This document shows, in pieces, positions 9,327 to 63,346 of a stretch of DNA of 64,000 nt; position 1 is the first letter of the stretch; each line of letters begins with the position of its first letter. The stretch lies in the sequence record MT028491.1. The stretch is one strand, 5' to 3'. The notes beneath the pieces were generated by a model. That model worked only from the letters and a program-made list of their open reading frames with translations. It was not told the origin of the DNA and searched no databases. The position numbers and the translations under genes were made by a program.

Positions 9327-9949
9327 GCATTAAGTTGTTGAATAACTTCACAAATGAGCTTTTTTTGTTCCCCACTGATCGATAAAGATTGAGCATACTT
9401 TTCTAATGCTCTAATAAGGGGTTTGAAATAAAATTCATCGTCGGAATTATCCAACCAGTATCCCGCTAATTTTGGGATACAAACCATAAGAGCCGCAACG
9501 ATTGTATAATCAGTTTCGCCCAACTCCATGGATTGAATGAGAATTGGTATTTGTTGAGTCTCCCTATCGATCTTGATAAGGTGTTTCAACTTAATACCTT
9601 CCTCATTCGAAAGAGCTTTGTTTATGTGATACGCATACGCGCTCGCAATATTCTCCACTCTTAAGACTTTCTTGAAGTTTTCTTCTGAATAGAAGTCTCC
9701 AATGTATTTAGAGAATTTCGACTCCTTTAAAAAGAAATCGAAGTGATTTATCATAAAAAACTGTGTCGCGTTCTCTTCCGTTACAAAGCGATTAGCAAGC
9801 TTCTTAAATCTGCCCCATTCGGTCGTATTTTCCTTTAGCTTACTAGCAGTTTTCAACCGCCCCTTGTATTTGAAAAAATCATAGTTTTCGCGTTCATAAT
9901 GGATAGCGGACGCTAGAAACAATTCTTTAACACGCGACTCTGTAATCAT
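9323..9949 (-). CDS. gp59: helicase loader (T4 gp59-like)
   Basis: A.AIHY..ENYDFFKYKGR...F.KLA..F; lies between gp33 and gp32 as in T4. Confidence 0.88.
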   Translation of the reverse strand: MITESRVKELFLASAIHYERENYDFFKYKGRLKTASKLKENTTEWGRFKKLANRFVTEENATQFFMINHFDFFLKESKFSKYIGDFYSEENFKKVLRVENIASAYAYHINKALSNEEGIKLKHLIKIDRETQQIPILIQSMELGETDYTIVAALMVCIPKLAGYWLDNSDDEFYFKPLIRALEKYAQSLSISGEQKKLICEVIQQLNA

Positions 9950-27492: not shown

Positions 27493-28581
27493 TTATTCAC
27501 GAATAAAATTAACAATATTTTTGCTAATCCTATCAAATTCTTCATCCATTGAATTTCGAATAAATTGCTTCTTTTCTTCGAAATTCAAACCACGTGGCAC
27601 TTCAACATAACGAATATTAAATTCGTCTAACAAATCTTTCCAGAACTCATAGGATGATTCGCGCTGATCACCACCATACCTTAACTGATCTTGTTCAAAA
27701 GGTATATCATCTGGCATAAGAAAATATCTATCAATTTCATATGACATTTTCTTAGCTGCTTTTAATAGATAAGGATTGGTATTAATGTCAAGGTCCATTA
27801 TTCGATAATACCCAACTGTTGAAAAAAGATCGGTATCATGAATGATGGTATGATATTGATCCATACCAATAACAGCTTTTTGATATCCAGATTGACCAAA
27901 AGATATGTTTTCCATCTTCTCTTTAGTCAATTCAGCCCCTACATGTTCCAGATAACCACGTGCATATTCTGGAACAAACAAGGTGTGTCCTGTTTTATCA
28001 TCATCTGCCAAAGCCTTAGCCATTGTTGTTTTACCAACCGATTCTTGTCCAAAAATGACAAATCTTTGCTGGAAATTTTCCCGAAAATATTGAGACAATT
28101 GCATCCAATTTTCTTTGATGTTTTGTCTGGCAGTTGTCCCTTTAATCGGATTTAGAACGCGATCAATATCATAAGGTACAAATCGACATCCAAATTTATC
28201 GGCAATAATTTGTCCATATGGTTCGGAAGAAATAATTGCCGTATCGGGAACAACATCATTTACCAAACTGACAATTGCATCTGTCCAATATTTCCAAAAC
28301 TTGACATCAGCGCCCGGAGTCGTTTCCAAATCAGGATTTGGATTTTGTGGCGCTTGATCATCCGCATGAGAGATAATTTCCACATTGTTCAAATTCTCAC
28401 GTCTAGCAAAGGATACTAGTGCTTCTGTTCTTTGAATAGAATAAATAGGTTCAAAAGAACGAGAACTAACAATTACATGAACTTTGCCAAATGTTATTGA
28501 AGATGCAAAACGAATTAAATCTTCATGACCGCGAGTCGGCAATAATGCCGTCATAAGTACAACAGAATTAACTATACGCAA
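27493..28581 (-). CDS. nadR: NadR-like NMN adenylyltransferase / ribosylnicotinamide kinase
   Basis: N-terminal cytidylyltransferase-fold MTALLPTRGH; C-terminal P-loop GQESVGKTT with PEYAR, DTDLFST, LRYGGD.RE; next to pnuC; likely TTG start at 28581. Confidence 0.82.
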   Translation of the reverse strand: MRIVNSVVLMTALLPTRGHEDLIRFASSITFGKVHVIVSSRSFEPIYSIQRTEALVSFARRENLNNVEIISHADDQAPQNPNPDLETTPGADVKFWKYWTDAIVSLVNDVVPDTAIISSEPYGQIIADKFGCRFVPYDIDRVLNPIKGTTARQNIKENWMQLSQYFRENFQQRFVIFGQESVGKTTMAKALADDDKTGHTLFVPEYARGYLEHVGAELTKEKMENISFGQSGYQKAVIGMDQYHTIIHDTDLFSTVGYYRIMDLDINTNPYLLKAAKKMSYEIDRYFLMPDDIPFEQDQLRYGGDQRESSYEFWKDLLDEFNIRYVEVPRGLNFEEKKQFIRNSMDEEFDRISKNIVNFIRE

Positions 28582-29224
28582 GATGCTTTCTCCATTGCGA
28601 ATACCCATAGACGGCATTCAAGAGGAATAGGAAGAATTGAATAGCAATTAGGTAGTTGCCTGTTTCAAAATTGACGTAAACAGAAACCACATTAACACCA
28701 ATCCACACGAACCAAGTTTCAATCTTTTTGCGATCTAGAAGGAATTGGGCAAGAATAGTACCAATCATTCCTAGAGAATCTAGAACCGCAAAACTACCAC
28801 CAAAATAACTATTGATTAGCAGTGCACCCAAATATGCAAGAGCCGTGAAAAACATATATTGATATAGGGATTTACCCTTTACATGTTGTACAGGCTTTGT
28901 TTCACTATCTTTGCCCCAAATGAAATAGCCATAGATGACAGTGGGAATGAGATAGAGATTAAGCATCATCGAAGCGTAAAGACCAGATTTCCAAAACACA
29001 TATGAAAGCAATGCCGTTGATAGAACTGCCATAGGGTAATTCCATCTGGTTTGCTTTACGCACATATATGTACATGAGAATGAGGTAAATGTTGCGGCAA
29101 CTTCCCACCAGTTAATTGCAGTCATCCAACCCATATTTTGGGCAAAAACAATAGAAAAACCTGTAAGCAATACTGCCAGTGCGAGCGATTCCAAAAGAAC
29201 CATTAACGAACGTTTATTAATCAA
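28568..29224 (-). CDS. pnuC: nicotinamide riboside transporter PnuC
   Basis: Multi-TM; WNYP, LDS......ILAQFLL.RKKIETW.VWI.VN, NAVYGY.QW. Confidence 0.92.
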   Translation of the reverse strand: MINKRSLMVLLESLALAVLLTGFSIVFAQNMGWMTAINWWEVAATFTSFSCTYMCVKQTRWNYPMAVLSTALLSYVFWKSGLYASMMLNLYLIPTVIYGYFIWGKDSETKPVQHVKGKSLYQYMFFTALAYLGALLINSYFGGSFAVLDSLGMIGTILAQFLLDRKKIETWFVWIGVNVVSVYVNFETGNYLIAIQFFLFLLNAVYGYSQWRKHLAYS

Positions 29225-31298: not shown

Positions 31299-32723
31299 TT
31301 ATACGTTTGCACGTTCCCTGATAAGCTTGAAGTTATCATCAACGATAAGTTTACCATTGACATAAACATCACGCATCAGTGGGTATCTATCGCGGAATAT
31401 CGAACCCTTTTTGTACTCTTCTTCCGGCAACGAAACGACTTTGCCAGCAATCATATACGTCTCATGGCGACCAAGCTTAGAAGCTTTACCATGATCGGTA
31501 GCAGGGTTTTTGTTAACACCGCGAATTTCACCATTGACAACAATTTCGCAAGCCTTTTGAGCAAACTTCAAAGTGTCTCTGGTCATCCCCTGTAGGAGAT
31601 ATCCACCGCAACCAAAAACAACATTTTCCGAAGAAATTTGATTGTCCTTGAGAACGTTCAAGATTTCATCGATAGTTGTTTCGGTAATGCCGTCGCCCTG
31701 AATAACACGAACACAATCAGGAAGAACCTTGTAACCCTTGGAATTGATACGGAAGCCGAAGCTATCCATAAGCATTTCAATAGTCTTGAGAACGATTTCC
31801 TTTGGTTCGCCCGAATCTGGACGTACCACCAAACGACCGCCCGACTTTTCGATACGGTCTTTGAACTTATCGCCCCAAAGGTCTTTGACGGCGCGGAATA
31901 GATCATACGAATCACTTACAACCGAAACAATCGAACCTTTCTTAAGAAACTGATCAAGCATATTTTCATAAGCAGCCGTTTCATCTTCGAAAGTTGAACC
32001 CCAACTGGTAATCGTGCTATGTTCCGCTGCCGGTACACTGTACGACAAACCATCCTTATCAGCATTGTAATAGCGCATAGCACCAATCATTCCTTCAAGG
32101 GTATCAGAACCCATGAAATTGACCAGATGTGCCATGCCACCTAAAACGGCTTGTTCGGAACAAGTTGCACCACGACCGCCGAAGTCATGAAGAGAGAACG
32201 AAAGGTCTTCGTTTTCCGCCGTTTCTTCTGCGAACTTTCTCAAGACTCCCTTGATAGTAAAAGAACGGGTTGCAACTGTCGTTGGATACCAAATACCGCG
32301 CAACAGATTTGTTTCGAGATATTGAGGCAACCAACTAAAGCGAGGATCGGTATTTTCAATTGTCGCCAAGACAATACGAGGCCCAACAACCATACCTTCC
32401 GGTATTGCTCGAATCTTAACTGGAATGAAACCCTTATGCTCACGCAAAATGGTTTCCCAATCGCCACGATTGAACACATCACCATGGGCAGTTGTCAGAA
32501 CTTCCATTTCATCGATATCCTGCATAGTAATTGGCTTAAGAAGATTTTCCTTAACCCATGCCTGTAGACCGAAGAATACTAGACGATCATAAAGACCACC
32601 ACGCGATTCGATATATGAGACAACCTTACTAATACCATCTGGATATTGAAGGAAATGGCCTGTCTTGTAACTATCAGCTTTGTTGATAGTTGATGTAGTT
32701 GTGATTTTAGTAATTGCATTCAT
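31299..32723 (-). CDS. nadV: nicotinamide phosphoribosyltransferase (NAMPT)
   Basis: KADSYK.GH, HDFGGRG, GSDT, PAAEHS, VVSDSYD, RPDSG, QGDG, FGCGG. Confidence 0.97.
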   Translation of the reverse strand: MNAITKITTTSTINKADSYKTGHFLQYPDGISKVVSYIESRGGLYDRLVFFGLQAWVKENLLKPITMQDIDEMEVLTTAHGDVFNRGDWETILREHKGFIPVKIRAIPEGMVVGPRIVLATIENTDPRFSWLPQYLETNLLRGIWYPTTVATRSFTIKGVLRKFAEETAENEDLSFSLHDFGGRGATCSEQAVLGGMAHLVNFMGSDTLEGMIGAMRYYNADKDGLSYSVPAAEHSTITSWGSTFEDETAAYENMLDQFLKKGSIVSVVSDSYDLFRAVKDLWGDKFKDRIEKSGGRLVVRPDSGEPKEIVLKTIEMLMDSFGFRINSKGYKVLPDCVRVIQGDGITETTIDEILNVLKDNQISSENVVFGCGGYLLQGMTRDTLKFAQKACEIVVNGEIRGVNKNPATDHGKASKLGRHETYMIAGKVVSLPEEEYKKGSIFRDRYPLMRDVYVNGKLIVDDNFKLIRERANV

Positions 32724-32800
32724 TTCTAAGACTCCCTTAGATATTTTAAAAATTACAACTTAAGCAAACCCCTTGCTTAAGAGGATTTGGGTTTTCACCC
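32721..32800 (-). promoter_or_regulatory. structured 5' leader of nadV (tandem GGRGU-loop hairpins)
   Basis: ATCCT-CTTAAGCAA-GGGGT-TTGCTTAAG...TCTAAG-GGAGT-CTTAGA-AATG; the same design recurs at 34768-34826. Confidence 0.7.
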
Positions 32801-32808
32801 GAATTCTT

Positions 32809-33054
32809 TTACCATTTTATGGTTAGATGATATTTCAAAAGAGTATCATTATCTACAGATACTTTAAATCCATACCTTTCAAGAGTGTCAACAATGACAT
32901 CTTTACATTCATAGGATTTACTAGGATAGACGAAAATTAAGTCTAAGCTGTTTAGACCATTTTTGGCCTTTGTCTCAATACTTTCTGAAATTTCTTCCAT
33001 GACTTCATCAATGGCAATTACAGACAATTCTAATGCATCTTTAGCCGTTATCAT
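32809..33054 (-). CDS. hypothetical protein
   Basis: MITAKDA... short alpha/beta phage type; similar layout to 33265-33582. Confidence 0.5.
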   Translation of the reverse strand: MITAKDALELSVIAIDEVMEEISESIETKAKNGLNSLDLIFVYPSKSYECKDVIVDTLERYGFKVSVDNDTLLKYHLTIKW

Positions 33055-33274
33055 TATCTTCTTTCCACTTAGTCCACTGTGTAGACCAAGACAAATTTAT
33101 AAACCATAAACCAAACAATTTATGTGGACCATCATACCAATTTTGACGATATCCCCAAAAACGTTCTTCTTTAGGAAGCCAATTCCAATATGAGAAATAG
33201 TACCAATCTGATTTAGGCCCACCCCATTCGAAAAATGCACCGTTTTTAACTATTCTGTGTTTTATCATGACCAA
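33041..33274 (-). CDS. hypothetical Trp-rich protein
   Basis: WGY.Q.WYDGP...FGLWF motif. Confidence 0.5.
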   Translation of the reverse strand: MVMIKHRIVKNGAFFEWGGPKSDWYYFSYWNWLPKEERFWGYRQNWYDGPHKLFGLWFINLSWSTQWTKWKEDNDNG

Positions 33275-33582
33275 TCTATATCTAATATATATGCTACCCT
33301 GTAAACATTAGATGTCCCATTTAAATCAAACGTGATATAATGTCCCCTGATATCAAGATCGGTCTTATAACCATCCTGAATTAGAAGTTCTTCCAAATAT
33401 TCAACATGTTCCAAACACACATTAAAAATATGGTTGGGTGCAAAATCATTCGTATTGATCAAGATTGAAGTTTTATTGGACAATGCAGCCGCTTCAATCA
33501 ATGGCTCAAGAGCCTTGATAGCCTTTTGACAGGCAATGTATTTACGATCTTCCATAATTGCTTTTGCATGAGCGGCTAACAT
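33265..33582 (-). CDS. hypothetical protein
   Basis: SD GGAG; first gene after the promoter. Confidence 0.5.
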   Translation of the reverse strand: MLAAHAKAIMEDRKYIACQKAIKALEPLIEAAALSNKTSILINTNDFAPNHIFNVCLEHVEYLEELLIQDGYKTDLDIRGHYITFDLNGTSNVYRVAYILDIDWS

Positions 33583-33609
33583 ATTTTCTCCATATTAAAA
33601 TGTTGACTA

Positions 33610-33638
33610 AGATTATAGTATCCTAGCCAACATGTCAA
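33610..33638 (-). promoter_or_regulatory. sigma70-type promoter of the nadV operon
   Basis: TTGACA-17nt-TAATCT (TATAAT at 15 nt). Confidence 0.6.
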
Positions 33639-33654
33639 CAACTATTTAAATTAA

Positions 33655-34770
33655 TCAGATGTTTAGCATCTTCTTAATCATGAAATAATGATCATCGTAG
33701 AATTCAAGCTTATGGATGTCAGAGACATGAACCCACTTGGCAAAAGCCGCATCGTCATCACCCTTGACATGGAAAAGCTTTCCCGTATCTGGTAGATCAT
33801 ACTTGAATACGGTTGTAATCACGCGACCACGCAAAGAACGACCCGGATAATCATTTGTCCATGTTGCACGTTCATCAATGAAGCTTTCGAGAATTTTTGC
33901 AGGAATTTTACCCTTGTGATCGCTCACTAGAGTTTCTTCGCGCAGTTCACGAATTGCAGCATCCTTGAATGTTTCCAGTTGTTCAATATGTCCACCGGGC
34001 AAAGCCCATTGACCAATACCAGAATCCTTACCACGCTGGATAAGAAGGATATGGCCAGATTGGACAACCAGATTATCCACACAATGAATTGTTGGTGGAT
34101 ATGGTGCACTTTCCCATGCCTTTTTATAGTCACGGTAGAACTCATATTCTCGCTTCAACCATTTGAAATGATCTGGATTCATTTCCTGCATATATGAAAG
34201 AATTTTCAGAACCGATTCAGGAACAAATTTTTCATCCCAAACACCAGTTTCATAAAAATTATCACGCAAATAAGTTGCGTCGATAGGCTTACCATTACCA
34301 TTTGGTTTTGGATCAACCAAGATAGGCGGAATCCATTCTGGAAACATTTTGATATAGGCTTCTGTAGCCTTATCCTTTGCACAGCCAACGATAGCAATTT
34401 GATTGAATTCGGCTTCAAGGTCAATATCTGGATCGATAAAACCGTTTCCACGTTCCAGCATATGTGTAACAGCTTCATGAACAGCATCACGAATATTTTT
34501 CGTCCATACCGTATCATTATACCAATCATCATCAGCCGTGGTTACAGTGAAATGATTTCGATTCCAACCGGCTTCCATAAGCGCATTATCAACCATAGAT
34601 GTACGCCAATTGGCAGGAAATGGATTCTTTGGAGAACGCGACACATTGGCAGAGCCGACAACCACAATGAGATTTTCACAGTGTTTCTTGGCTTCTGTAA
34701 CCACATGCATGTGACCAGTGTGGAATGGATGAAAGCGACCAATATAGACGCCATACTTTACTTTAGACAT
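33655..34770 (-). CDS. nadM: bifunctional NMN adenylyltransferase / Nudix ADP-ribose pyrophosphatase (NadM-Nudix)
   Basis: YIGRFHPFHTGH, GSAN..RSPKNPF, Nudix box GGHIE.LETFKDAAIRELREET, GDDDAA.A.W, DH..MI. Confidence 0.95.
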   Translation of the reverse strand: MSKVKYGVYIGRFHPFHTGHMHVVTEAKKHCENLIVVVGSANVSRSPKNPFPANWRTSMVDNALMEAGWNRNHFTVTTADDDWYNDTVWTKNIRDAVHEAVTHMLERGNGFIDPDIDLEAEFNQIAIVGCAKDKATEAYIKMFPEWIPPILVDPKPNGNGKPIDATYLRDNFYETGVWDEKFVPESVLKILSYMQEMNPDHFKWLKREYEFYRDYKKAWESAPYPPTIHCVDNLVVQSGHILLIQRGKDSGIGQWALPGGHIEQLETFKDAAIRELREETLVSDHKGKIPAKILESFIDERATWTNDYPGRSLRGRVITTVFKYDLPDTGKLFHVKGDDDAAFAKWVHVSDIHKLEFYDDHYFMIKKMLNI

Positions 34771-34826
34771 TTTCTAAGACTCCCTTAGACATTTAATAAC
34801 ACGACAAACCCCTTGTCGCTTAGGAT
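34768..34826 (-). promoter_or_regulatory. structured 5' leader of nadM-Nudix (tandem GGRGU-loop hairpins)
   Basis: ATCCT-AAG-CGACAA-GGGGT-TTGTCG...TCTAAG-GGAGT-CTTAGA-AAATG. Confidence 0.7.
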
Positions 34827-34831
34827 AGACC

Positions 34832-35083
34832 TTATTCCTCTAGCAATTCAAAACGGAATTGTAAAGTCTTATTGTCCATTTTACATAAAAGTTCACAATA
34901 GACAAACAAAACACCTAGAGAAACAAGTTCCAATCTATAATTCGAAATGGCAGAAATAGCCGCTTGGTTAATACCTGTAGCATTGGAAATTTCTGTACCA
35001 TTTATATTTAGCTTGGCACGAATAGCATTTCCCTTTTCAGCAAGCTTAAACTTAATTCTGTCAATTTCGATATGTGATGTCAT
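34832..35083 (-). CDS. possible XRE-type helix-turn-helix protein
   Basis: INGTEISNATGINQAAISAISN resembles an HTH. Confidence 0.5.
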   Translation of the reverse strand: MTSHIEIDRIKFKLAEKGNAIRAKLNINGTEISNATGINQAAISAISNYRLELVSLGVLFVYCELLCKMDNKTLQFRFELLEE

Positions 35084-42771: not shown

Positions 42772-43004
42772 ACTAATTCCTCTACCACCACGTCACTAAT
42801 AGTGTAACGATCTTTGCTATAATCCCATTGACGATATAGAACACCGTCGCCAAATTCTTTATGTGAAAGAAGCTTTTCCTTTAAAGTTTTTGCCCCATCC
42901 TCATTCAATGTTCGAAATGAACCGTCTTCATCTGGCCTATTTGAATCATTCAAATATTTTTTCTTAAAACGGACTATCCACTTGAATTCCATCGCTTTTG
43001 TCAC
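42768..43004 (-). CDS. hypothetical protein
   Basis: Operon ORF. Confidence 0.5.
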   Translation of the reverse strand: MTKAMEFKWIVRFKKKYLNDSNRPDEDGSFRTLNEDGAKTLKEKLLSHKEFGDGVLYRQWDYSKDRYTISDVVVEELV

Positions 43005-43383
43005 CTTCCTGTGTCTTGAAGATTTGCCAGCGTGTCCTTTGAAGGTTTATCGTATCCATACCGATTTTATGTTCTTTCCATAAAATCTTTTCACCGGATT
43101 CGTACACGTCTCTTGGCAATACCAAATCAACAGCTTCACCCAACATTTCGTTGATGAATTCACCATTATGGTTGAAGCCATCATTCAACGTTCCTCTAAT
43201 GCCATATCCATGCATAATCAATAGACAACTAAAAATTATTTTAGGATCGGCTTTGCTCTTTATATTTTTATTTAGCAAAAGGGAATCGTCTCTGACTTCG
43301 CCCATAACTCCATCGCCAAGGTCTTCAATTTTCATTTCTAGACCAGCATTCTTAATGAAATTGGCGATAGATATTACTGTCAT
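42964..43383 (-). CDS. hypothetical protein, weak IrrE/ImmA-like resemblance
   Basis: LGDGVMG...LLLN.N and A.DLVLP layout, but no HExxH. Confidence 0.4.
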   Translation of the reverse strand: MTVISIANFIKNAGLEMKIEDLGDGVMGEVRDDSLLLNKNIKSKADPKIIFSCLLIMHGYGIRGTLNDGFNHNGEFINEMLGEAVDLVLPRDVYESGEKILWKEHKIGMDTINLQRTRWQIFKTQEGDKSDGIQVDSPF

Positions 43384-62972: not shown

Positions 62973-63346
62973 AATCCTGCATGTTTAAGATGTAGCTTTA
63001 TCTCTAGCAATACATCCTTTACCGAAGTACCTTTTATCTCGCCACTATGAATTTTTGCAATTCTATCCAAACCCCTTGCCATGATTTTGGATTGGGTTTC
63101 GAAATGGCCATCGTTTTCGTTTAGTCTCTGTATCCTATCTTCCAAATCTTTATTCTCTTGCTTTACGCTTGACAATTCGATTCTTAGAGATTGAATACGC
63201 GCAGCATATTGAGAATTTTGATTGTCTGTTGCATTGACCGAGTCAAGTATGTTTTCAATTTCTGAATAGAAAACATATTCTCCATTTGGAGCTTCAACCA
63301 TTTTCATACGACCAGCAAAACCGCGCTCAATTTTGTATCTTTTCAT
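62969..63346 (-). CDS. coiled-coil hypothetical protein
   Basis: MKRY...M.E.PNGEYV.Y N-terminus followed by heptads. Confidence 0.55.
   Translation of the reverse strand: MKRYKIERGFAGRMKMVEAPNGEYVFYSEIENILDSVNATDNQNSQYAARIQSLRIELSSVKQENKDLEDRIQRLNENDGHFETQSKIMARGLDRIAKIHSGEIKGTSVKDVLLEIKLHLKHAGL

Follow-up and report, generated by a model that had tools for sequence, protein, structure and literature searches.

RNA elements that control translation of the gene they precede are known in several designs. In the protein-bound operators of Escherichia coli thrS, T4 gp43, RegA and MS2 coat protein, one or more hairpins lie at or near the Shine-Dalgarno (SD) sequence and the AUG, and the loop is read by a protein, often the encoded enzyme itself and often a dimer on two hairpins; conserved loops are combined with covarying stems. 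The guanidine-II (mini-ykkC) riboswitch has two small hairpins with conserved loops, free stems and a variable linker and controls translation at the SD, its two identical ACGR tetraloops kissing through a self-complementary CG. The boxB hairpin of lambda nutL, with the loop GAAGA, acts with boxA in transcription antitermination. Control of nadV, nadM, prs and pnuC, genes of nicotinamide adenine dinucleotide (NAD) metabolism, has been described for the operators of NrtR, whose effector is ADP-ribose and whose site is a 21-bp DNA palindrome with the core GT-N7-AC, and of NadR, with the site TGTTTA-N6-TAAACA (PMC2330246). The subject here is a two-hairpin leader found before the NAMPT (nadV) and NadM-Nudix genes of Ochrobactrum phage vB_OspM_OC (OC), in a 64-kb window that matches bases 62001-126000 of its genome (MT028491.1, 227,654 bp) at 100% identity. 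The two enzymes constitute NARP2, a phage pathway that rebuilds NAD+ against NAD-depleting defences (10.1101/2024.02.11.579819).

The two look-alike leaders of OC are real, and the finding is larger than these two copies. They belong, as divergent copies, to a large 5' leader RNA family that precedes nadM(-Nudix) and nadV/NAMPT widely in bacteria and phages, among which the OC copies are atypical. The RNA forms two independent hairpins and is present in one copy per gene, in the 5' untranslated region (UTR) or in intercistronic space. It is very probably a functional cis-regulatory RNA that acts on translation.

A leader RNA before the NAD-salvage genes

Read from 5' to 3', each OC leader consists of ATCCT, a hairpin 1 with the loop GGGGU, an A/U-rich linker, a hairpin 2 carrying the SD, and the ATG. 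That both NAD genes are preceded by the same architecture had been claimed in an earlier note on this DNA, made from the sequence alone, and is confirmed by the sequence, by RNAfold and by counts in the window. The 17-mer of hairpin 2 occurs in exactly two places in the window even with three mismatches (0.07 expected), a number of occurrences reached in none of 100 shuffles, and exact matches to ATCCT-N7-AAGGGGTT are restricted to the two leaders. One extra exact copy of CAAGGGGTTTG, within an open reading frame (ORF) at 63068-63078, and a one-mismatch copy at 9415-9425 are taken as chance matches; neither is upstream of a gene. The further claim, that no other gene of the window has this design, agrees with a blastn search of the whole 227-kb OC genome, which returned only the two leader places, and with a scan for SD-in-loop hairpins next to start codons, which gave no comparable hairpin at other genes of the window. 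RNAfold predicts both hairpins in both leaders; since the z-scores are modest (-0.8 to -1.75), folding energy alone would prove nothing for these leaders.

The wider family was collected by retrieving nadM-Nudix and NAMPT loci by protein from IMG/VR, together with isolated phages. A covariance model (R1) was built from 24 phage leaders, and a model-based alignment was used, as MAFFT-only alignments misalign hairpin 2. The family design comprises a hairpin 1 with a freely varying stem and the apex G-AUAGA-C, a G-poor, A/U-rich linker (median 9-10 nt, range 3-19 in the aligned leaders, with one cyanobacterial outlier of ~36 nt) and a hairpin 2 that has the SD in a 3-5-nt loop and a 3' arm that serves as the SD-AUG spacer, reaching up to or into the AUG; the start codon thus lies 0-5 nt after the stem or inside it. 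This design stands before nadM-Nudix and NAMPT/nadV in hundreds of phage contigs and in isolated phages including DSS3P8, RTH11 and the GAP32-like jumbo phages. In Roseobacter phage DSS3P8 and Xanthomonas phage RTH11, as in OC, each of the two NAD genes has a full copy of its own. The usual form at NAMPT loci is a promoter, AAGUCC-NNNN-GAUAGAC-NNNN-GGCA, a linker ending in UAAC and a hairpin 2 such as UGAUAAG-GAG-UUUAUCAUG.

Model R1 gave 134 matches in 100 sources, located at nadM or NAMPT starts and all on the strand of the NAD gene apart from a single marginal match (17.9 bits, E = 0.75), with 83 more in loci of metagenomes and GAP32-like phages and 48 in bacterial genome loci, at the starts of nadM and nadV. 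Sigma-70-like promoters lie 5-25 nt upstream of hairpin 1 in many contigs, which places the element in the 5' UTR. The bacterial scan, made with one genome per GTDB species, returned 80 nadV loci from taxa including Thiothrix, Pseudoalteromonas luteoviolacea, Microbulbifer, Neptuniibacter, Psychrobacter, Candidatus Thiodiazotropha, Oceanobacter and Xenococcaceae cyanobacteria, and many loci below the model threshold still show a GAUAGAC hairpin on inspection. Hairpin 2 in bacteria is a classical SD sequestor (AGGA-GGAUU-UCCU-AUG or GGAG-GAA-CUCC at nadV, CAGUAAG-GAG-CUUACUG at nadM). The metagenome scan yielded phage contigs and also high-GC contigs of 268-860 kb with covarying stems before nadV, for example GGCCCCG-GUUGA-CGGGGCC-AAC-GUGAAAG-GAG-CUUUCAC-AUG.

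Covariation is strong in both helices. In the alignment of the 134 matches fitted to the model, 94.2% of cells are paired, compared with 56.0% in column shuffles and 37-48% in slid controls; changes on both sides of a pair occur in 630 cells, compared with 183 in shuffles, and compensatory changes in 13 of the 14 pairs. The count was repeated on bacterial genomes and metagenomic contigs that contain no seed sequence, where 95.9% of cells are paired as against 59.7% and both-side changes number 349 as against 99. The motif and its covariation, for which the earlier note had looked to homologous phages, are thus present there and also in bacteria. That note had seen covariation in the hairpin 1 stems of OC; both stems do pair, but they are two copies only, from a phage without a close relative.

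In 90 of 125 leaders (72%) hairpin 2 is closed by a G-U pair, and this, together with the strand of the matches, suggests that the element is an RNA and not a DNA palindrome. An operator at the DNA level, in which TCTAAG-N5-CTTAGA would be recognized by an NrtR/NadR-type factor or by phiOC_p133, is accordingly very improbable. Hairpin 2 of OC is indeed a perfect 6-N5-6 palindrome, its sequence is invariant in OC, in IMG/VR contig 3300022562_000051 (L002) and in all GAP32-like phages, and phiOC_p133 has a sub-threshold match to HTH_26. Across the family, however, the arms vary freely and covary, whereas a DNA half-site would stay conserved, and the site lies downstream of the promoter, at the ribosome-binding site. 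The NrtR core GT-N7-AC and the NadR site TGTTTA-N6-TAAACA are absent (PMC2330246); neither TCTAAGGGAGTCTTAGA nor hairpin 1 has GT-N7-AC within a palindrome.

The association with the two NAD genes is close. The strict pattern AAGTCC-N4-GATAGAC-N4-GGCA was found in 106 stretches of IMG/VR, and 81 matches were read: 74 precede NAMPT, two precede a C-terminal NAMPT half, one ends at a contig end and four are chance matches that do not pair. Over 759 kb of loci, 162 distinct SD-loop hairpins were seen at ORF starts, and the two NAD genes account for 117 of them. In the GAP32-like phages nadM and NAMPT each have a leader, but the ~172-aa gene that separates them has none. The full leader before C-terminal-half NAMPT ORFs (225-249 aa, starting MSE(R/K)(Q/K)Y...) was seen at L131:6066, L195:932 and L172 (minus strand, 5047); these may be split or truncated NAMPT genes. 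A PnuC-like gene on an IMG/VR contig (L101:199) has hairpin 2 only.

Some genes outside this pair also carry the leader. Two groups of phage proteins of unknown function have genes each with its own promoter and two-hairpin leader: proteins of 108-109 aa with an HTDGCGW motif, PHROG 12218 (L044:129-455, L087:1092-1418, L102:95-421, L072:219-548), and proteins of 117-118 aa, PHROG 37251 (L094:677-1033, L114:3818-4171). They are likely to belong to the same regulon and are possibly NAD- or defence-related. A GAUAGAC hairpin with an SD hairpin also stands before ORFs of 310 aa (L013:4785 onward), 98 aa (L015:2138) and 50 aa (L199:7403); a 310-aa radical-SAM-like protein carries the full leader, the CxxxCxxC radical-SAM-like motif being found in one such non-NAD ORF.

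Three further features were noted at these loci. The promoters of bacterial nadV genes contain an inverted repeat, TAGTGGC-N5-GCCACTA, between -35 and -10, ~60-110 nt upstream of the start (L389, L395, L401, L409, L411, L351 and L359); it is a candidate transcription-factor operator distinct from the RNA leader and unlike the NrtR core GT-N7-AC as published. A tmRNA-like sequence lies beside the NAD genes of one phage contig (L088:1-294), where it is cut off by the contig end and does not reach the beta_tmRNA gathering score. Another contig has two tRNA genes a short way upstream of nadM (L009:303-375 and 2357-2428).

The divergent leaders of phage OC

The features of the OC locus are collected in Table 1, with leader sequences given on the minus (coding) strand; all genes around both leaders are on this strand.

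Table 1. Positions of the two leaders, the NAD genes and neighbouring features (window coordinates unless a locus is named)
Feature	Position	Strand	Details
NAMPT/NadV gene phiOC_p128, 474 aa	31299-32723	minus	Annotation; behind the first leader
NAMPT start codon ATG	32723-32721	minus	1 nt (A) beyond hairpin 2
NAMPT leader in full		minus	...GGGUGAAAACCCAA-AUCCU-(CUUAAGCAA GGGGU UUGCUUAAG)-UUGUAAUUUUUAAAAUA-(UCUAAG GGAGU CUUAGA)-A-AUG
NAMPT leader, hairpin 2	32725-32741	minus	UCUAAG-GGAGU-CUUAGA, SD in loop; sequence and RNAfold; -4.1 kcal/mol
NAMPT leader, linker	32742-32758	minus	UUGUAAUUUUUAAAAUA, 17 nt, A/U-rich, G-poor; sequence
NAMPT leader, hairpin 1	32759-32781	minus	9-bp stem CUUAAGCAA/UUGCUUAAG, loop GGGGU 32772-32768; as DNA CTTAAGCAA-GGGGT-TTGCTTAAG; sequence and RNAfold; -8.5 kcal/mol
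NAMPT leader, ATCCT	32782-32786	minus	Common to the NadM leader, at an equal 7-nt distance to AAGGGG
NAMPT leader, small hairpin GGGU-GAAA-ACCC	32789-32800	minus	Sequence and RNAfold minimum-free-energy structure
NadM-Nudix (NatV) gene phiOC_p132, 371 aa	33655-34770	minus	Annotation; behind the second leader
NadM-Nudix start codon ATG	34770-34768	minus	2 nt (AA) beyond hairpin 2
NadM-Nudix leader in full		minus	UAA-GGUCU-AUCCU-AA-(GCGACAA GGGGU UUGUCGU)-GUUAUUAAAUG-(UCUAAG GGAGU CUUAGA)-AA-AUG
NadM-Nudix leader, hairpin 2	34773-34789	minus	Same 17 nt as the NAMPT copy; sequence and RNAfold
NadM-Nudix leader, linker	34790-34800	minus	GUUAUUAAAUG, 11 nt, A/U-rich; sequence
NadM-Nudix leader, hairpin 1	34801-34819	minus	GCGACAA-GGGGU-UUGUCGU, 7 bp including one G-U, loop 34812-34808; sequence and RNAfold; -6.8 kcal/mol
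NadM-Nudix leader, ATCCT	34822-34826	minus	Sequence
GGUCUAUCC in NadM-Nudix leader	34823-34831	minus	Directly after the phiOC_p133 stop codon; exact reverse complement of the canonical apex GGAUAGACC
Promoter-like TTGACA-N15-TATAAT	33600-33640	minus	Upstream of phiOC_p131
phiOC_p133	34832-35083	minus	HTH_26 match below threshold
pnuC	28568-29224	minus	
nadR	27493-28581	minus	
UUCG-tetraloop terminator-like hairpin of GAP32-like phages	L223:4085-4128, L224:2400-2442, L226:4113-4160		After nadM

Both OC leaders stand immediately upstream of the NadM-Nudix or NAMPT start on the sense strand; their hairpin 2 falls within the family range (stem of 5-9 bp, loop of 3-5 nt containing the SD GGA/GAG, start codon within the stem or 0-5 nt beyond it) and their linkers do so in length and in their G-poor, A/U-rich composition. 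The departure is in hairpin 1, the loop of which is GGGGU closed by A-U, compared with R-N-N-G-A (mostly AUAGA) closed by G-C or C-G. Because of this loop the OC leaders fit the model weakly: in a window-only search with filters off, R1 scored the NadM leader at 18.9 bits (E = 0.043, rank 1) and the NAMPT leader at 14.9 bits (E = 0.33, rank 4), compared with 30-62 bits for canonical members. The same search gave a weak match at 42939-42988 on the minus strand (15.4 bits, E = 0.26) that contains GGAUAGUCC and overlaps the start of ORF 42964-43383; it is probably due to chance.

ATCCT, which had been placed inside hairpin 1 and regarded, like the loop, as invariant, in fact lies 5' of the hairpin, and neither ATCCT nor GGGGU is conserved in the family, in which the canonical loop is A-N-A-G-A. 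The proposed switch in which ATCCT pairs alternatively with a G-rich loop consequently lacks comparative support. An ATCCT-GGGGU pseudoknot or alternative helix was rejected: the 5 bp that it forms on paper in OC include three G-U wobbles and are sterically poor, the helix is in neither the minimum-free-energy nor the centroid structure, and ATCCT is absent from the family.

The 13-nt core GCAAGGGGUUUGC of OC hairpin 1 is identical to the SD hairpin of the P. luteoviolacea nadM leader, and for this reason OC hairpin 1 may be a second, duplicated hairpin of the SD type. A possible trace of the canonical hairpin lies further 5'. Read on the plus strand, the GGUCUAUCC segment of the NadM leader gives GGATAGACC, the only exact match to the apex 9-mer in the window (~0.5 expected per 64 kb), and it occupies the position where the canonical hairpin 1 would be. 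It is probably a relic of an ancestral GG-AUAGA-CC hairpin, the loop of which would have been inverted between the arms. At the corresponding site of the NAMPT leader, the small GGGU-GAAA-ACCC hairpin abuts the stop codon of the upstream ORF (32809-33054).

A close relative of OC was found neither in GenBank phages and IMG/VR nor in metagenomes and GTDB genomes, the best NAMPT identity being 50-57%, and searches with exact 15-mers and 17-mers returned only GAP32-like phages and L002, never with a GGGGU hairpin 1. The hairpin 2 sequence of OC (15-20-mer) also occurs at the nadM and NAMPT starts of L002 and of the GAP32-like jumbo phages (Serratia BF, Pectobacterium CBB, Cronobacter GAP32, Yersinia fHe-Yen9-04, Xanthomonas XaC1 and ~20 IMG/VR contigs), in which CUAAGGGAGUCUUAG is unchanged before both NAD genes. 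Their hairpin 1 (for example CAAAGC-GUUGUA-GCUUUG, GAAAGC-GUUGUA-GCUUUC and AGAGAAC-GUAGUA-GUUCUCU) has a covarying stem and a G-W-W-G-U-A loop and, like that of OC, departs from the R-N-N-G-A rule. Upstream of nadM-Nudix, L002 has the 21-mer TTCTAAGGGAGTCTTAGAAATG identical to that of OC. As the NadM-Nudix proteins are only 41% identical (NAMPT 54%), these 21 identical nucleotides are conserved far beyond neutral expectation. The order in L002 is a terminator, a TTGACT-N17-TATACT promoter, the hairpin GUAACGGG-AUAGA-CCUGUUAC, a short linker and hairpin 2, and the element is therefore a 5' UTR.

These comparative data already contradict the notion that the resemblance is an accident of OC, by which one leader was copied from the other through duplication or gene conversion and has no function, the NAMPT hairpin 1 being merely a weak terminator. 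In OC itself, the two copies agree over the 19 nt made up of hairpin 2 and its tail, and the terminator scan flagged the NAMPT hairpin 1 (ten pairs, three of them G-C, followed by the T-rich tail TTGTAATTTT, compared with a CA-rich linker after the canonical hairpin 1). The NadM hairpin 1, however, has no T-run and was not flagged, the hairpin 1 stems of the two copies differ while the loop is kept, the same hairpin 2 stands at the same two genes in distant phages with proteins 31-41% identical, and the design covaries throughout the family. An accidental origin is thus hardly credible.

The two genes may be separate transcription units, as described earlier: the promoter-like TTGACA-N15-TATAAT lies between them, but the terminator scan gave no terminator after NadM-Nudix, the only clear one being at 31293-31268, after NAMPT. 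The promoter-like sequence lies within a 34-nt inverted repeat, ATGTTGGCTAGGATACTATAATCTTAGTCAACAT, that was also flagged by the terminator scan, and TTGACA promoters of a similar kind, each preceded by a terminator, were seen upstream of p144 and p121. A MotA-box or sigma-70 promoter within the OC leaders themselves was rejected, since the spacing differs by 6 nt between the copies and the promoter scan is empty there. In the GAP32-like phages nadM is followed by a terminator-like hairpin with a UUCG tetraloop (GGAGUACUUCGGUACUCC and a U-run), which lies before the ~172-aa PHROG 25832 gene.

Annotation identifies phiOC_p132 as a bifunctional fusion of an NMN (nicotinamide mononucleotide) adenylyltransferase with an ADP-ribose pyrophosphatase of the Nudix hydrolase type. 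Three small genes of unknown function separate the two NAD genes, and neither pnuC nor nadR, which lie downstream, has a two-hairpin leader. The match of phiOC_p133 to the Cro/C1-type HTH_26 family reaches 17.2 bits against a cut-off of 22, and no counterpart of this protein was found beside the NAD genes of other phages. A possible mini-ORF follows the AAGGGG of hairpin 1 in the NadM leader (GUG-UUA-UUA-AAU-GUC-UAA, region 34801-34773, with its stop in the 5' arm of hairpin 2); the corresponding one in the NAMPT leader is UUG-UAA (region 32759-32742), so that the mini-ORFs are inconsistent between the two leaders.

Probable translational control and its possible partner

The canonical loop of hairpin 1 consists of A (120 of 120), a second position with U more frequent than G and G than A, A (111), G (118 of 118) and A (118 of 118), and is closed by G-C (96) or C-G (16), while hairpin 2 keeps AAG-GAG/U/A-UUU. 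Within one genome, the nadM and NAMPT leaders change together in loop and in type of closing pair, although their stems are unrelated. Five lineages show such changes: C[ANNGA]G in L037, L040, L048, L077 and L092; GUAGA on each of the four hairpins of the two leaders in L012 and L021; UCC-AGAGA-GGA in RSL1; G-W-W-G-U-A in the GAP32-like phages; and GGGGU in OC. Hairpin 2 has a median energy of -2.0 kcal/mol in phage leaders and -4.3 kcal/mol in bacterial leaders, the OC value being close to the latter.

These features suggest that the element controls translation initiation of each NAD-salvage gene separately, which would preserve the core of the earlier proposal of a shared translational operator as a gene-specific RNA-level element at the ribosome-binding site. 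Hairpin 2 would be the recognition and occlusion site, presenting or hiding the SD and the AUG; it is taken as a bound site because selection maintains it even though it lacks the strength to block ribosomes unaided. A trans-acting factor would bind the conserved hairpin 1 loop and the SD hairpin and keep hairpin 2 closed or cover the 30S landing site, thereby setting the translation of each gene. This factor would be a co-evolving macromolecule, since the loop and closing-pair types switch in concert in both leaders on unrelated stems. Parallel changes at two separate sites are expected of such a partner, whereas a fixed small ligand would hardly permit them. The best guess as to the mechanism is that dimeric NAMPT or NadM-Nudix represses translation autogenously and that a substrate or product may relieve this, with the thrS and T4 gp43 operators as working analogies. 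The two enzymes are guessed to be the partner because only they always accompany the element, whereas no regulator gene does: scans of ten neighbours with Pfam and PHROG gave unrelated families of unknown function and no conserved regulator gene. The dimeric protein on two GGRGU pentaloops that had been envisaged fits the lineages with the same loop on both hairpins and the concerted changes, but GGGGU is specific to OC. The chain as a whole, from translational operator through co-evolving protein to autogenous repression by one of the two enzymes, is put forward tentatively, with somewhat less than even confidence.

Several observations weigh against this reading. Neither NAMPT nor NadM-Nudix is known to bind RNA. 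The few non-NAD phage genes with the leader must be taken as co-regulated passengers if repression is autogenous; some bacterial nadV genes with the leader have no nadM within 3 kb; and IME-SM1, RB43 and L004 keep hairpin 2 only. Short gene conversion or, in a riboswitch, variant ligand specificity could also account for the concerted loop changes. Finally, the weak scores of the OC leaders mean that the traits of the family may not fully hold for OC.

The weakness of hairpin 2 and the constancy of the loop also bear on whether any trans-acting factor is needed. The leader could be a constitutive structural ribosome-binding site in which hairpin 2 keeps costly or toxic enzymes low, the linker is a ribosome standby or S1-binding site and hairpin 1 insulates the site and shields the 5' end of the mRNA from RNase E. 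A stable hairpin, a G-poor single strand and an SD hairpin make up a standby-site design, hairpin 1 is at the predicted 5' end of many transcripts, hairpin 2 alone is kept in some phages and the KVP40 NARP2 operon has been reported to be toxic in E. coli (10.1101/2024.02.11.579819). Such a generic design hardly accounts for the gene specificity, however, nor for loop positions 1, 4 and 5, which are strictly invariant over >190 leaders with unrelated stems; internal copies without a promoter keep the same hairpin 1, and at -2 to -4 kcal/mol hairpin 2 would be too weak to cut translation much. A purely constitutive role is therefore considered rather unlikely. RegB-type cleavage at GGAG and an RNA thermometer were rejected, as neither explains the gene specificity across unrelated phages and bacteria.

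A conserved host factor (a CsrA-type RNA-binding protein, a ribosomal protein or an RNase) is an improbable reader of the hairpins. The pattern of GGA, which is always in or beside the hairpin 2 loop, resembles paired CsrA sites of which one overlaps the SD, many bacterial hairpin 1 apices are GGAUAGACC and the linker resembles RNase E sites. GGA is not kept in hairpin 1, though: it is missing from GUGAUAGACAC, GCGAUAGACGC, the OC loop GGGGU and most phage apices (GAUAGAC, CAGAGAG). In addition, loop types are lineage-specific among phages of similar hosts, and the hosts include Alphaproteobacteria, from which CsrA is generally absent.

RNAalifold, applied to 36 leaders extended to +45, found only hairpin 1 and no alternative pairing or expression platform, and together with inspection it gave no alternative pairing anywhere in the family. 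Pairing of the hairpin 1 loop with hairpin 2 or the coding region was rejected: GAUAG could pair with a 3' arm UUAUC/UCUAU in some NAMPT leaders but fails to do so in many (L007, L009, DSS3P8), and L048 and L053 have the same hairpin 2 with the loops AGAGA and AUAGA, respectively. The missing platform and the several-fold variation in linker length disfavour a compact two-state aptamer; they do not argue against a loop-loop design of the guanidine-II type.

The main rival to the translational operator is a new riboswitch class of this latter kind, in which both hairpins would bind a small molecule of the NAD cycle [NAD+, NMN, nicotinamide, ADP-ribose or phosphoribosyl pyrophosphate (PRPP)], the loops would meet only with the ligand bound and binding would stabilize or open the SD hairpin, so that the salvage enzymes are made only at NAD depletion or nicotinamide supply. 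The exclusive link to one metabolic pathway favours it, as do the invariant loop without sign of base pairing, the marginally stable SD hairpin in need of a stabilizer, the tolerance of a variable linker as in guanidine-II and the lack of a dedicated regulator gene nearby. So does the broad spread over Gammaproteobacteria, cyanobacteria, high-GC metagenomic contigs as long as 860 kb and phages that infect alpha-, beta- and gammaproteobacteria, and the metabolic cost of NARP2 makes control by a ligand plausible (10.1101/2024.02.11.579819). Only about five motif-specific nucleotides outside the SD are invariant, however, some phages have hairpin 2 without hairpin 1 and the hairpin 1 loop varies by lineage (AUAGA, GWWGUA, GGGGU) in concert in both leaders, which would be unexpected for a fixed binding pocket; nor was an expression platform found. 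We regard such a riboswitch as possible but doubtful, and the same holds for its being a third, widespread NAD-pathway class that senses NAD+ depletion or the products nicotinamide, ADP-ribose or NMN. Were it so, bacteria would gate nicotinamide salvage by it, phages would switch NARP2 on only when an NADase defence of the host fires, and OC and the GAP32-like phages would carry variant loops of altered specificity.

With either a protein or a metabolite as partner, the element is a leading candidate for a level of NAD control that has so far been missing: few cofactors are as abundant as NAD+, but its two known riboswitch classes are rare and narrowly distributed, whereas the strongly covarying nadV/nadM leader occurs in Gammaproteobacteria, cyanobacteria and many phage lineages. 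NARP2 lets phages rebuild NAD+ against Thoeris, DSR, SIR2-HerA and SEFIR, and is costly (10.1101/2024.02.11.579819); a dedicated translational switch for each gene would explain how phages afford it and would provide a handle on the timing of counter-defence. The element is only ~50 nt long, and the loop-swap lineages (AUAGA, GWWGUA, GGGGU and GUAGA on both hairpins) are natural specificity mutants. The covariance model also marks the true start codons of these two genes and singles out a few small phage proteins of unknown function that are likely to belong to the regulon.

Relation to known systems

No Rfam 15 family matches the leaders of OC or of canonical phage and bacterial members at E-values of up to 5-10, in line with the earlier impression that the element does not resemble the NAD+-I or NAD+-II riboswitch and answering the comparison with Rfam that had been suggested. 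A description of such a nadV/nadM motif was not found in the searchable literature, outside which most subscription journals lie; the OC genome paper makes no mention of promoters, terminators, hairpins or a leader, and the NARP paper is silent on UTRs, leaders or control of NARP2 expression (10.1101/2024.02.11.579819). The leader family is thus uncatalogued in Rfam 15 and in searchable papers, within which limits it may be called undescribed.

Among protein-bound elements, the operators of thrS, gp43, RegA and MS2 coat protein differ from the nadM/nadV leader in that its loops mimic no known substrate, and its occurrence in unrelated phages and in bacteria would be unusual for a phage-specific operator. 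The lambda-type boxB resembles it in having a short stem and a purine-rich pentaloop R-N-N-G/A-A; here, however, there is no boxA, the position at the ribosome-binding site is fixed, A is the first base of most loops and the element is found in bacteria as well. In contrast to the DNA palindromes of NrtR and NadR with their conserved half-sites, the nadM/nadV leader is strand-specific, covarying and part of the transcript. It also differs from paired CsrA/RsmA sites, as GGA is found in hairpin 2 and not in hairpin 1 of OC or in most phage apices.

Among riboswitches, guanidine-II is similar in its two small hairpins, freely varying stems, variable linker and control at the SD. Its ACGR tetraloops have no equivalent here, the loops being GGGGU and GGAGU in OC and A-N-A-G-A and the SD loop in the family; these are usually unlike each other and not complementary, and there is no Rfam match. 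The NAD+-I (nadA) and NAD+-II (pnuC) riboswitches are likewise cis-acting 5' leaders of NAD-metabolism genes, NAD+-I with tandem domains and NAD+-II with the ribosome-binding site within the structure (PMC7749635, PMC6859854), but neither model matches OC or the canonical members, even at E = 10. NAD+-II has a single P1/P1a stem with an internal loop and a pseudoknot onto the ribosome-binding site and is represented by 43 unique sequences at Streptococcus pnuC, whereas the leader described here has two separate hairpins without a pseudoknot and stands before nadV and nadM in many phyla and in phages.

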